Below are positions 21,401-40,875 of a DNA stretch of 64,000 nt, piece by piece. Positions within the stretch are counted from its first letter, which is position 1. Each line of letters begins with the position of its first letter. The translations under genes and the position numbers were made by a program. The stretch lies in NCBI RefSeq assembly GCF_000142905.1, contig NW_013657648.1:264922-328921 (forward strand), written 5' to 3'. Under the pieces are notes generated by a model, which saw only the letters and a list, made by a program, of their open reading frames with translations, ran no database searches and was not told where the DNA came from. This DNA comes from Thecamonas trahens ATCC 50062. Taxonomy: Eukaryota > Protista > Apusomonadida.

Positions 21401-22356
21401 GTCTCGATCTTGAGCCGGAACGACTTGAGCGGGCCGATCTTGAGCGTCGAGACCTCGTCAAAGCCCAATATGGTGTTGGTTCCTTCAAGCTTGTACATGT
21501 GGACTCGAAAGTCATGAGCGCCGAGAGCAAGCGTCTCAAAGTCGGAGATGTACGTGGCGCAAGTAACCCGCGGAGCTGAAGCCGGAGCATGAACCGTCAG
21601 CACCCGCTCGAGAGTCGTTGTCTTGTAAGCAGCAAGCGTGCCGTCGCTGGCCACTGCCATGTAGTTCTTGAATGTCGGCGCGTAGAACATGTGCGCAATC
21701 GGCGCGGCCAGAGGGTACTTTGGTGGCGGCGGCGGCGGATCGCGAGCAAAGGTGGTGGCTGCGGCCTCGCCGGCGGCCGATGAGCCGCCGGCGTCAAGGG
21801 ACTCGGGGACTTCACCAAGCATGCCCGCCGAGGTCGAGATAAAGTGGTCGATGAACTCTTGCGCGTCAACGGTCCCGTCTTGGTTGGCGTCGATCTTGTG
21901 GAAGAGCTCCTCAACCTTGTCTGTGTCCACGCCGAGATCTGTGCCCAGAATGGGACCAAAAGCATCGACAAACTCACCGAGGTCTAGCCCACCCGATTCG
22001 TCCTCATCAGCCTCTTCAAACTTGAGAATGGCGGCCTGGAGCGAGGAGATGCGGACGAGTGACTCGACGTGGAGCTCGTCCATGTACGATGTGAAAGGCT
22101 GCAGCGAGGCATACGAGGCCCGCACATTGGTTGGCGCTGCTGGAGGCGCCACAAACGAGCTCACGTCAACCATCGAGTCCTGCCGCCGCACCTCGCCTCC
22201 GTCTGCCAAGCTACCGCTTCCGTTGCTGTGGCTCGCGGCCAGTTGCTTGCCCGTCACCAGCGCCCTCAACGACGCCTGCGACTTGCTCCGCAGCACCGCC
22301 CGCGACTCCGACAGTCGCAGCGAGCTCAGCTGTCGCCTCGACTTACCTCTCCGCAT
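18409..22356 (-). CDS. EF-hand plus WD40-repeat protein (WDR49/EFCAB8-like, probably ciliary)
   Basis: Two EF-hands (DEDESGGLDLGEF, DANQDGTVDAQEF) followed by many WD repeats (ATGGRDTRLRVW, GHTAPI, VKVWD, VTASEDGTVAVW, SAAYDGEIVVWN). Confidence 0.8.
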   Translation of the reverse strand: MRRGKSRRQLSSLRLSESRAVLRSKSQASLRALVTGKQLAASHSNGSGSLADGGEVRRQDSMVDVSSFVAPPAAPTNVRASYASLQPFTSYMDELHVESLVRISSLQAAILKFEEADEDESGGLDLGEFVDAFGPILGTDLGVDTDKVEELFHKIDANQDGTVDAQEFIDHFISTSAGMLGEVPESLDAGGSSAAGEAAATTFARDPPPPPPKYPLAAPIAHMFYAPTFKNYMAVASDGTLAAYKTTTLERVLTVHAPASAPRVTCATYISDFETLALGAHDFRVHMYKLEGTNTILGFDEVSTLKIGPLKSFRLKIETAVSSMSFRDKVPSLANVPLALDYTSLLSDPDRALFAIGDDTSCVSIFGLSKLAVMTDDRGLGHALDVRAIRAGDVPTSLSHIALPVSDDEAWMKGLVLLPSASCEFAAAYDLPDTSLVVGSVRPDGAPGPFRIGAVPGGVHSVATWTTLSQVPFLATGGRDTRLRVWKPSILTDPLLVFTGHTAPIAKVVPGLNDYQLLSLDTGNTVKVWDIRVSNCLATFAGVELGNLEEWRRHGMDGPPDAVTQLLPDRLRRRIVASSNELYSFSRVQKREHALDITHYQPLVTVVHEPYFGNVVTASEDGTVAVWSVTTGTKIKEFAGATRGDPLTAMILCNKTRIATASRTGKVFIWNFMNGKFLKELHNIDSAEVSDLAFAHQHSAHNTFVMEQVARVTSRKAAHELLTTLRPTEDNKYVIAVGWSRRLAVWRDTKLDADAYVWKQLPSHGGVFDDDGESAGESASRRARRARRSRAAAEHGVDVSSSGWAKAKARARAETRARARAMRARTAGKASPTPRRSSLLASTVAWEEDSEDDEYEYEYEYDGGGTSEFGGLGGHDEPHREDVLCCEFYPPNLLASAAYDGEIVVWNLNSQRELQRMQAPEHRELVESSHAAGVLDHVAALDAASIGAMTFVEPPSRAKAGGALPAIAAGSGDGIVRIWQLWDTKMPPVTTRRPPEAETSVKAVAYDPMLSMLFVGDSRGRIGVYSLRVSSDPGAMRWSVDAGLVALVQAHAWDVPLVSLQIVSSRRKRYSGYLVSGASDSRARLWRVSPGAGGLGFIGTFGQPAKWNLTEAKDNLPPDMPRSDDESDTESGASDSGSQLPHRARVIVPSVEGLLAPTRAHVAGRRSIFRGVVIDGDLDAADLDDAAPSRLRPAGSATPASPPRARTAPNRARRSTQASPPRRRRSSRAAASPPRRRRSSRAIAELAADLVQQPPAYEWIEFDESSGRLRPQDEVRVEKAELHRIRDVVVTSEVQTLVDSGPISFANAQTGVANE

Positions 22357-22482
22357 GGCGGTACTCTCAGTGAGTTTCAGAGGGGTGTGTGACGTCTAGC
22401 GACGACTACATGGCTGTGCGTAGCTGTTCGCGCCGTGAAGGGGAGCGGAGCGGCGAGGGTGGCGGCCAGGGCAAAAAAAAGT

Positions 22483-22554
22483 AGTCCACAGTGGTAATCG
22501 AAACCACAGCCTTCTGTTCCGTAGACAGATGTCATGCCACTAGACCATGCGGAC
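22483..22554 (-). tRNA. tRNA-Arg(ACG), copy 1
   Basis: GTCCGCA-TG-GTCTAGTGGCATGAC-A-TCTGT-CTACGGA-ACAGA-AGGCT-GTGGT-TTCGATT-ACCAC-TGTGGAC-T cloverleaf; T8 terminator 2 nt downstream. Confidence 0.9.
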
Positions 22555-22582
22555 GAGTTGAGAGAGAAAGGGAAATCTACAC

Positions 22583-22606
22583 TATTTGAAGCGTGCTTTG
22601 CTTTGC
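22583..22606 (-). promoter_or_regulatory. Conserved 24-bp element upstream of tRNA genes (also 22746-22769, 22908-22931, 40439-40462, 40751-40774)
   Basis: Ungapped alignment of five instances, + strand consensus TAYTTGAANNGTACATTGCWTTGC, 27-32 bp from each tRNA 5' end. Function is inferred. Confidence 0.65.
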
Positions 22607-22646
22607 TTCGGAGAAAGAGCAGGGTGGCCACCTGGACAAAAAAAGT

Positions 22647-22718
22647 AGTCCACAGTGGTAATCGAAACCACAGCCTTCTGTTCCGTAGACAGATGTCATG
22701 CCACTAGACCATGCGGAC
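22647..22718 (-). tRNA. tRNA-Arg(ACG), copy 2
   Basis: Identical to copy 1; T7 terminator. Confidence 0.9.
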
Positions 22719-22809
22719 GAGTTATTTGGAGCGGTCAATCTTCAGTACTTGAATGGTACACTACTTTGCATAAGCAACATGAGCAGGGTGCCGAGCACGG
22801 CAAAAAAGT

Positions 22810-22881
22810 AGTCCACAGTGGTAATCGAAACCACAGCCTTCTGTTCCGTAGACAGATGTCATGCCACTAGACCATGCGGAC
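22810..22881 (-). tRNA. tRNA-Arg(ACG), copy 3
   Basis: Identical to copy 1; T6 terminator. Confidence 0.9.
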
Positions 22882-23966
22882 GAGGGTGACTACGTCTCCA
22901 CATACGGTACTTGACGGCTACATCGCATTGCTCATGCTATCAGTGTTGTCCGCAAGCGCACACGTACCGTGCAGTTTGCTGGAGCAAGCAACCCAACAGT
23001 ACCACTAGCTCAATGCCCGGAAGGTGGGTGTTGGCGTTGCCTGGATGGAGGGGCAGCATGCCGCCTGCGTGAACTCGAGTACGAGCCTAAACCTCATACC
23101 TAGCGGTCAGAGGAGCAGTGCAACAGCCATCTCCCTGGCAAAGGCAATAATCCATGCGATGTCCTCCCACGTGTGCATCGAGTCAAAGTCGCAAGTCGAT
23201 GGTGAAATGTGCGACGATGACGATCGCAAACACGGCGCGTGGACGTGAAAGCAACGCAACGCAAACGGCCAAGATGCGAGCAAACACTTGTGGAACATGC
23301 GCAGCAGCAAGTACAGGAGCAGCAACCCAGAGCAACTGGAAGAACAATGTATGGCTCATGACGCAAAGGTACGCAGCAGTCTGCGACGAGTCCATTCAGC
23401 TCATGGTAGGTGACCGGGCCGGGGGGAGAAGGTTGAGGACAAGGTTTTTGGCAAAATGCCAGGTGTGGAGAGCGACCTGAGGGAGAAGCCGCCAGTCACA
23501 GCCAAGTAGCGACGAGCCACCAGCAACGAGACTCACACCATCCATCGCTGTACCCTTACGACTTCAATCTATCTTCCAAACCATGTTCTTCTTCTCCGTA
23601 GAGCAGTGTTCTAACGATGCTGAACTTGGGGCGGCAACAGCCACTCGAAAGGCGCCAACTATCTCCCCCCCCCCCGCCCAAGTCTTGGCCCCGAGTCCTG
23701 CCTGCGAGAGGCCTCATCTGAATTGGATTGGCATGCCCACTCTCTAGCTCACACTGCGGCTTGGACTGCTGCTGCCGATCCATGATCAGGCGCTAGACGT
23801 TAAAGTAGTGGCCTTTGACGGGCTGGGGGAGAGTGCGGCTGCTCCTGGCTGGCCTTGGCTTGATCTTGGGGCGATCTCGGCCGATGGGAAGCCGGGAGGG
23901 TGGGAGAGGGGGGAGGATGGGGTGCGTGGCAGCTTGCTGCTCAAAGGTTCATTACGGTGAGGAGGA

Positions 23967-39998: not shown

Positions 39999-40334
39999 GG
40001 CGGCTCCGCCGCCAAGAATCCGCCGCCGCCGCCGACGAGTCGTCGTTCCGCTGCTGCGCGTAGAGTACATCGTTGTGAAAGAGTCGTGTGTGGGTCATCT
40101 TGGGCCGCTCACCTCTGCCGCCGCTTCCGCTTCCGCAATGCATTGCCATTGCTACTGGCGAGAAATTTCTTTTTGAGTTTTGAACTCACAAACTGCTGCT
40201 AACAACGCCTAGCGCGGCTGGTGAGCGAAAGCATCACATCAACGTGTGTATGACACGTTCCGACCAGAGCTGGTGATAGGCACAATAGAGTAGGTAGATG
40301 CAAGGTGCTCACACGGGCAAAAAAAAACTGGATA

Positions 40335-40407
40335 GCCTTCCTAGGGTATTCGAAACCCTAACCTTCAGCGCCGAAAGCTGACGTCATATCCATTAGACCA
40401 AGGAAGG
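40335..40407 (-). tRNA. tRNA-Arg(TCG)
   Basis: CCTTCCT-TG-GTCTAATGGATATGAC-G-TCAGC-TTTCGGC-GCTGA-AGGTT-AGGGT-TTCGAAT-ACCCT-AGGAAGG-C; T9 terminator at 40319-40327. Confidence 0.85.
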
Positions 40408-40650
40408 ACATACTACAACTGTCGAGTGCATTTTTTAGTATTTGAAGCGTACATTTGATTGCCGCCTTAGGCGGGTGCTCCTGCGCGCTCTACAGGCCGA
40501 CTACGAGCCGCGAGCACCTAGCAATGTTGTGCACAGTATGTACATACTCAGAGTTGCATGAGCTTGGGCTCTCGTAGACGTAGATGTGGGGTCGGCCGCC
40601 GGATGCGAGGTCAGTGAGTGGGAGGGTGGCGGCCAGGGCAAAAAAAAAGT

Positions 40651-40722
40651 AGTCCACAGTGGTAATCGAAACCACAGCCTTCTGTTCCGTAGACAGATGT
40701 CATGCCACTAGACCATGCGGAC
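40651..40722 (-). tRNA. tRNA-Arg(ACG), copy 4
   Basis: Identical to the copies at 22.5-22.9 kb; oligo-T terminator. Confidence 0.9.
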
Positions 40723-40875
40723 GAGTTGATATGGAAGGGGTGATCTGCTATCATTAAACAGTACATTGCATTGTAATTTCTCACGTGCGAGCAGGATCAA
40801 GATGCCGGAAGGTCTGGCGCGAGGACGTGGCAAGCAGTTGGAGGCAGCAGCGGCAGAGGAAGGCAAGACTTGACG

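Follow-up and report, generated by a model that had tools for sequence, protein, structure and literature searches.

A two-part upstream element as the likely core of an extragenic promoter at the tRNA genes of Thecamonas trahens

Transfer RNA (tRNA) genes are textbook examples of genes with internal promoters, and the question raised by a 64-kb stretch of DNA from Thecamonas trahens (contig NW_013657648.1, positions 264,922 to 328,921; called the window below, always at its full length) is why each of its five tRNA genes should be preceded by a conserved 24-nt element in this apusomonad flagellate. An earlier note on this window had proposed a sequence-specific upstream promoter over the TFIIIB site, analogous to the upstream elements of U6-type genes and perhaps compensating for an altered internal B box. 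We searched the whole 28.7-Mb assembly (131 contigs, ~62% G+C; the window lies on contig 32), and our results make it likely that tRNA transcription units have an extragenic promoter with the 24-mer as its core. The sequence specificity of the element, its location at the position of TFIIIB and the TATA box, and its promoter-like behaviour all held up in this analysis, while the likeness to U6-type elements and the compensation of the B box did not.

The window contains five tRNA-Arg genes on the minus strand, four with an ACG and one with a TCG anticodon, on which ARAGORN and Rfam agree. The ACG genes lie at 22483..22554 (copy 1, with a T53:A61 T-arm), 22647..22718 (copy 2), 22810..22881 (copy 3) and 40651..40722 (copy 4), and the TCG gene, with a body unlike that of the ACG genes, at 40335..40407. 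The five 24-mers, also on the minus strand, are found exactly at the positions given for them in the earlier note, with the tRNA 5' ends 26–31 nt off, and each can be divided into an upstream box (box 1) and a TATA-like box. For example, the element of copy 1 (22583..22606; 23.8 bits in the position weight matrix described below) consists of box 1 at 22593-22606, with the sense sequence GCAAAGCAAAGCAC, and a TATA-like box at 22583-22590, with the sense sequence TTCAAATA. The elements of copy 2 (22746..22769), copy 3 (22908..22931) and copy 4 (40751..40774) have box 1 at 22756-22769, 22918-22931 and 40761-40774, and TATA-like boxes at 22746-22753 (sense TTCAAGTA), 22908-22915 (sense GTCAAGTA) and 40751-40758 (sense TTTAATGA), respectively. 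The element of the TCG gene (40439..40462, with box 1 at 40449-40462 and the TATA-like box, again TTCAAATA in sense, at 40439-40446) reaches 27.2 bits, the top score among all genes. When the window was searched with GCAAWGYARTRNAYNNNNHWAAWW, a degenerate pattern built from tRNA genes elsewhere in the genome, five matches with up to three mismatches were obtained, exactly at the five sites and all sense-oriented, where 0.46 were expected; five matches were reached in none of 100 shuffles.

Near-identical DNA is found in marine and estuary metagenomes; among the runs recorded as RNA, none contains the locus. Contigs of environmental strains (from four runs) show eight variable sites across 22300-23100. 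Five of these eight fall in the 26–27-nt spacers between motif and tRNA, one at a weakly constrained position of a TATA-like box and none in box 1, numbers that are too small for a test.

To place these five sites in the genome as a whole, a first set of 66 tRNA genes from the entire assembly, representing 37 distinct tRNA bodies (families), was scored with a cross-validated weight matrix, which was trained on half of the families and applied to the other half, with the 99.9th percentile of random 80-nt windows as the cut-off. The upstream regions of 52 genes exceeded this background, and the carriers cover 31 of the 37 tRNA bodies and nearly all isotypes. In a second set of tRNA genes, found by the terminator signature alone (see below) and lying outside the matrix training, the element was present at 14 of 17 genes. 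Taken together, 66 of 83 genes carry it, so the motif does occur at other tRNA loci. The 17 genes that do not carry it are five downstream members of homodimeric tandem pairs, seven 3'-extended tRNA-like units and five ordinary-looking genes; with the tandem-downstream genes and the extended units set aside, the element precedes 66 of 71 independent tRNA units.

A genome-wide search with GCAAWGYARTRNAYNNNNHWAAWW, allowing up to two mismatches, yielded 46 matches compared with 6 for the reversed control. In 25 cases, among them all 13 matches with at most one mismatch, a tRNA gene follows directly. One of the matches with at most one mismatch exposed a tRNA pair missed by the first search, and another match exposed a tRNA with a long intron. 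At the 19 motif-match loci away from tRNA genes, where the matches are weak and mostly have two mismatches, neither an Rfam RNA nor a terminator was seen, with the exception of one intron-containing tRNA. As to such introns, a minus-strand tRNA gene at C25:89934-90557 (L059) has one of ~110 nt, and a cluster of five tRNA genes in both orientations at C64:77500-81100 (L084) is made up of 96-nt genes with introns, with the upstream box at four of the five.

One explanation for a shared motif would be recent duplication of tRNA genes along with their spacers, and some of the genes are indeed tandem or local copies (for example Arg-ACG, four copies; Ala-AGC, five copies; and Thr-AGT). However, the families that share the motif are unrelated to one another, and a comparison of 1285 gene pairs from different families revealed an identity of 0.59 at the informative motif positions, falling in the flanks to 0.26 (20 nt upstream) and 0.29 (18 nt downstream), where 0.26 is expected at random. 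Since the flanks are random and the motif precedes nearly all isotypes, duplication does not account for it, which bears out the view that recent copying is not the sole explanation; we rejected duplication on the strength of the cross-family comparison and give it practically no chance.

In a motif-anchored logo, which matches the sense consensus noted earlier for the five window sites, box 1 reads CAAWGYARTGnAY (13–14 bp, 13.2 bits), that is, two tandem CAATG-like pentamers followed by nAY. After two to three free positions comes the TATA-like box, WWYAAATA (8.7 bits), which begins 33–40 bp before the mature tRNA 5' end. The orientation of the element is strict, and when the best matches of the two boxes were found independently of each other, their start-to-start distance was 16 bp in 44 of 52 genes. 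Information content drops to about zero on either side of the motif, and the DNA between motif and tRNA is unconserved, as had been noticed for the window, with the exception of a weak CAA ~30 bp downstream of the TATA-like box (at +47..+49, counted from the start of the motif; C in 31, A in 35 and A in 30 of 51 genes). This CAA keeps a far more constant distance to the motif than to the tRNA, which suggests that the start site is set by the upstream element and not by the gene body. On the 3' side, most tRNA genes have a T5–T11 run within ~12 nt of their end.

These features also bear on the idea that the element acts in RNA, for instance as a processing signal within an extended 5' leader whose transcription would begin further upstream. 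Speaking against this idea, a conserved CAA follows 30 bp after the TATA-like box, and information is at random level upstream of box 1, so that no additional promoter is visible there. Moreover, in a U5-like RNA (see more below) the element is found at an equal distance from the 5' stem. We therefore regard an RNA-level role as highly improbable.

Five homodimeric tRNA pairs (C20:404120-404293, C57:66238-66402, C35:357542-357712, C5:593886-594067 and L105:315-488) have spacers of 25–28 nt, with the upstream box before the first gene only and a downstream ACCCTC element after the second gene only. The absence of the upstream element from all five downstream members points to a role in initiation-complex assembly. 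The tandem pairs also speak to another explanation, in which box 1 would be bound by a chromatin, boundary or regulatory factor, such as a nucleosome-excluding or insulator protein, beside a conventional TATA-assisted type 2 promoter. Yeast tRNA genes serve as chromatin boundaries (PMC11346459), around 20 motif-like sites are not associated with tRNA genes, and the promoter role has been deduced by computation, all of which would be compatible with such a site. On the other hand, the rigid 16-bp phasing with the TATA-like box, the strict orientation, the lack of box 1 at downstream tandem genes and the nature of the non-tRNA sites, mostly weak two-mismatch matches without terminators, all argue for a promoter element, and a chromatin or boundary site appears unlikely to us.

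[quoted passage not shown] Through the downstream signature, Rfam identified the signal recognition particle (SRP) RNA (E 1.6e-14), RNase P RNA (E 5.8e-12) and U1 (E 9e-11), and a family search gave 24 5S rRNA genes; U2-like, U4-like and U5-like candidate RNAs were recognised by eye, and Rfam calls none of them. U6 and U2 were not found in the Rfam family search or with conserved-core patterns at up to three mismatches, perhaps due to absence of the loci from the assembly or to their divergence. The 5S, SRP RNA, RNase P RNA, U1 and U2-/U4-like genes showed no score with the tRNA matrix, and the motif marks tRNA transcription units and a single U5-like gene rather than all Pol III genes. The 5S, SRP RNA, RNase P RNA and U1 genes and, more tentatively, the U2-/U4-like candidates have another box upstream, either AAACCCATTT or a sequence close to it. 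Its loci are L070-L075 (5S), L078 (SRP RNA, C11:476398-476950), L079 (RNase P RNA, C12:254240-254792), L097 (U1, C10:231741-232293), L083 and L104. Where the 5' end of the RNA is defined (5S, U1), AAACCCATTT is ~55–65 bp upstream; it is often trailed ~10 nt on by CAAATTT, and in some genes a TATA-like box follows. The 5S genes have two promoter subtypes, with or without a TATA-like box, and both 5S type I and RNase P promoters have a TATA-like box but no box 1. None of the 66 tRNA upstream regions of the first set contains AAACCCATTT. Given that AAACCCATTT is found on other small-RNA genes and box 1 on tRNA genes, this genome has two classes of external small-RNA promoter.

Could box 1 nevertheless be this organism's proximal sequence element (PSE) or upstream sequence element (USE), bound by SNAPc, so that tRNA genes would use a U6-type (type 3) promoter common to small nuclear RNA (snRNA) genes? 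Like the type 3 promoters of vertebrate U6, 7SK and tRNA-Sec genes, the plant USE and the Dictyostelium upstream sequence element (DUSE), the tRNA element is external and bipartite, with a TATA-like box at ~-30; SNAPC3 is encoded (E 1.4e-40), and one Sm-type, U5-like gene without A/B boxes has the motif. At the same time, it is AAACCCATTT, at ~-60, and not the tRNA element that the snRNA-type genes have in common with SRP RNA, RNase P RNA and 5S genes, and the complete absence of AAACCCATTT upstream of tRNA genes also argues against a shared promoter. In addition, box 1 is separated from the TATA-like box by a mere 2–3 bp, whereas a PSE or USE is 15–25 bp, or two helical turns, away. The analogy to the PSE/USE of U6-type genes is thus not supported, and we find it quite improbable that the tRNA motif is a SNAPc site. 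That part would instead go to AAACCCATTT, which looks like the equivalent of USE, DUSE and PSE: its position and C-rich core are like those of the Dictyostelium DUSE and the plant USE. In Dictyostelium, the DUSE lies ~60 nt upstream of both Pol II and Pol III non-coding RNA genes (PMC7919456).

The U5-like gene is a single case. It carries box 1 and the TATA-like box (22.5 bits) at the proper distance from the predicted 5' stem and has no A/B boxes; in its RNA, a long 5' stem-loop, whose loop is U-rich and 11 nt in size, is accompanied by an Sm-like site and a 3' hairpin (folding z = -3.6). The candidates for Sm-class snRNAs (U1, U2-like, U4-like and U5-like; L098, C11:341651-341776, minus strand; L104, C24:302973-303525; L083, C63:125235-125787, minus strand; and L097) all end in T4–T6 runs followed by the ACCCTC element, which raises the possibility that the spliceosomal snRNAs are all Pol III products here, by analogy with trypanosomatids. 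Further AAACCCATTT sites were seen at C29:286167-286697 (L141, minus strand), C47:255257-255787 (L142) and C58:187814-188344 (L143), where the box is followed by apparently non-coding sequence that ends in T-rich runs and in which Rfam finds nothing; possibly these are MRP, U3, telomerase or other RNAs.

The T53:A61 T-arm of the window genes had led to the suggestion that the upstream motif compensates for an altered B box. Across the genome, canonical G53:C61 is present in 33 of the 37 tRNA families, together with a TTCRA loop, and six families have deviant T-arms: T53:A61 in Arg-ACG, Arg-TCG and Cys-GCA, A53/A61 in Phe-GAA, and A54 in Asn-GTT and Val-AAC (outside the window, at C79:43893 for Cys, C64:100650 for Phe, C52:137575 for Asn and C18:1937 for Val). 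Most of the canonical families carry the motif too; it is present irrespective of the B box and does not track T53:A61 tRNAs, and we rejected B-box compensation for this reason. The number of deviant T-arms is nevertheless unusual and, speculatively, would fit a relaxed dependence on TFIIIC.

Which proteins might read the element? The genome encodes one Brf1, with a zinc ribbon, TFIIB repeats and a BRF1 domain, one Bdp1 with a single SANT domain, one TFIIB, and one open reading frame with a TFIIIC B-block domain (36 bits). A Brf2-like paralogue was not seen, TFIIB and Brf1 being the only members of the family found in the genome. Two candidates for the box 1 reader were rejected on these grounds, namely a Bdp1 with extra Myb/SANT repeats and a Brf2 paralogue. 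In the mechanism that we propose, TBP within TFIIIB would bind the TATA-like box and a further sequence-specific DNA-binding activity would read box 1. The two together would fix TFIIIB and hence the start, at the CAA a few nt before the tRNA. A dedicated factor is a more probable reader than Brf1 or Bdp1 on its own, since 5S type I and RNase P promoters contain a TATA-like box and presumably employ the same Brf1 but have no box 1. The internal A/B boxes and TFIIIC would probably still be in use, and there would be one promoter per transcription unit, with the element of a tandem pair placed at its first gene only.

Several observations weigh against an extragenic tRNA promoter of this kind. 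Five apparently normal tRNA genes with terminators have no good motif, and the tandem spacers hold T5–T8 runs that would be expected to stop Pol III before the second gene. No box 1 reader was found among the Bdp1 and TFIIB-family candidates. The identity of the U5-like gene is based on its architecture alone, and Rfam does not recognise it. Moreover, the evidence comes from the genome of one species, and computation alone predicts where transcription starts, which polymerase carries it out and that it depends on the motif.

How does the element compare with known upstream sequences? A TATA box at ~-30 and a CAA upstream of tRNA genes are established in plants and Schizosaccharomyces pombe, and animal tRNA genes have no common upstream signature (PMC3082873, PMC11547032, PMC11346459). 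The Thecamonas genes resemble those of plants and S. pombe in having a TATA-like box ~30 bp before the presumed start, a CAA at that predicted start and an oligo-T terminator, as in TATA-assisted type 2 promoters, and in showing this arrangement for nearly all isotypes. They differ in that plants and S. pombe have no further specific element, while here a 13-bit box 1, holding more information than the TATA-like box itself, is joined upstream of it. The element is thus a variant of the plant and fission-yeast TATA-type tRNA promoter, new in its box 1.

A specific element right upstream of TATA is also known from core promoters with a TFIIB recognition element (BRE), in archaeal genes, tRNA genes among them, and in Pol II genes. 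Box 1 is similar in lying immediately upstream of the TATA-like box, at the place expected for a TFIIB-family factor, which would be Brf1 here. Unlike a BRE, it is twice as long, contains A/T and bears no resemblance to SSRCGCC, and it is missing from the TATA-containing 5S type I and RNase P promoters despite the single Brf1 that they presumably share. In budding yeast, sequences at ~-53 to -30 of tRNA genes influence the placement of TFIIIB, assisted by the high-mobility-group (HMG) box protein Nhp6 (PMC11346459). Those are low-information patterns and Nhp6 is not sequence-specific, in contrast to the high-information, near-universal element found here. The CAAWG core of box 1 resembles the Sox/TCF-type HMG-box consensus, a likeness that we offer as a lead only.

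A stronger version of the promoter hypothesis is that the element forms a self-sufficient external promoter, in which a dedicated box 1 protein recruits TBP/Brf1/Bdp1 to the TATA-like box, as a fourth Pol III promoter type parallel to the SNAPc/AAACCCATTT class and with TFIIIC partly dispensable. This would explain both the drift of the T-arms (T53:A61, A54) and the presence of the element at the U5-like gene, which, having no A/B boxes, hints at promoter autonomy. We put self-sufficiency forward tentatively, as a possibility that we rather doubt.

No account of Pol III promoters in Thecamonas or apusomonads turned up in a full-text search of open-access PubMed Central (PMC) and bioRxiv, and the upstream tRNA consensus described to date is solely a plain TATA box accompanied by CAA, known from plants and fission yeast (PMC11547032, PMC3082873). 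The element reported here, from a free-living relative of animals and fungi, is rich in information, rigid in its spacing and near-universal among the tRNA genes, and a separate PSE-like box precedes other small-RNA genes. Should the tRNA element prove functional, the architecture of Pol III promoters would be more plastic across eukaryotes than model organisms suggest, and there would be a new DNA-binding specificity in or beside TFIIIB. It would also provide a compact, predictable small-RNA promoter for apusomonad genetic tools, and the upstream box and the downstream ACCCTC together would make a simple signature for annotating the Pol III units of this lineage.

The downstream signature found 3' of tRNA genes consists of a T-run followed by GCY, nine free bases and ACCCTC, and has 136 matches in the genome compared with 9 for the control. 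A T-run with GCY-N9-ACCCTC comes directly after nearly every small-RNA gene (tRNA, 5S, SRP RNA, RNase P RNA, U1 and U2-/U4-/U5-like), and the ACCCTC element is very effective for locating such genes; it may act in termination, 3' processing or recycling. In the window, all on the minus strand, the T-run and downstream element of ACG copy 1 (GCC-N9-ACCCTC) lie at 22455..22477, those of copy 2 (variant GTC...ACCCTG) at 22620..22642, those of copy 3 (ACCCTG variant) at 22784..22806 and those of copy 4 at 40622..40644; the TCG gene is followed by a T9 run and a degenerate element (ACCTTG) at 40301..40327.

A scan of metagenomes for relatives, with the B box and terminator signature as the query, gave 12 loci, most of them unrelated (bacterial or from other eukaryotes). 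Three marine contigs (L106-L108) showed a tRNA-Pro-like gene split in the D-arm region by ~110 nt and followed by a T-run and GCC-N9-ACCCTC. No clear box 1 was found upstream of this gene in the three contigs, which may come from a relative.

The upstream element is absent from all seven tRNA-like units with 3' extensions of 28–115 nt. Genes of this kind were seen at C18:409422-410086 (L047), C62:26596-26678 (L048), C14:431563-431770 (L038, with a paralogue, L081) and C80:14600-14670. The extension, in some cases with a hairpin, precedes the T-run and the ACCCTC element, and the units on C18 form an array of four repeats of ~194 bp.

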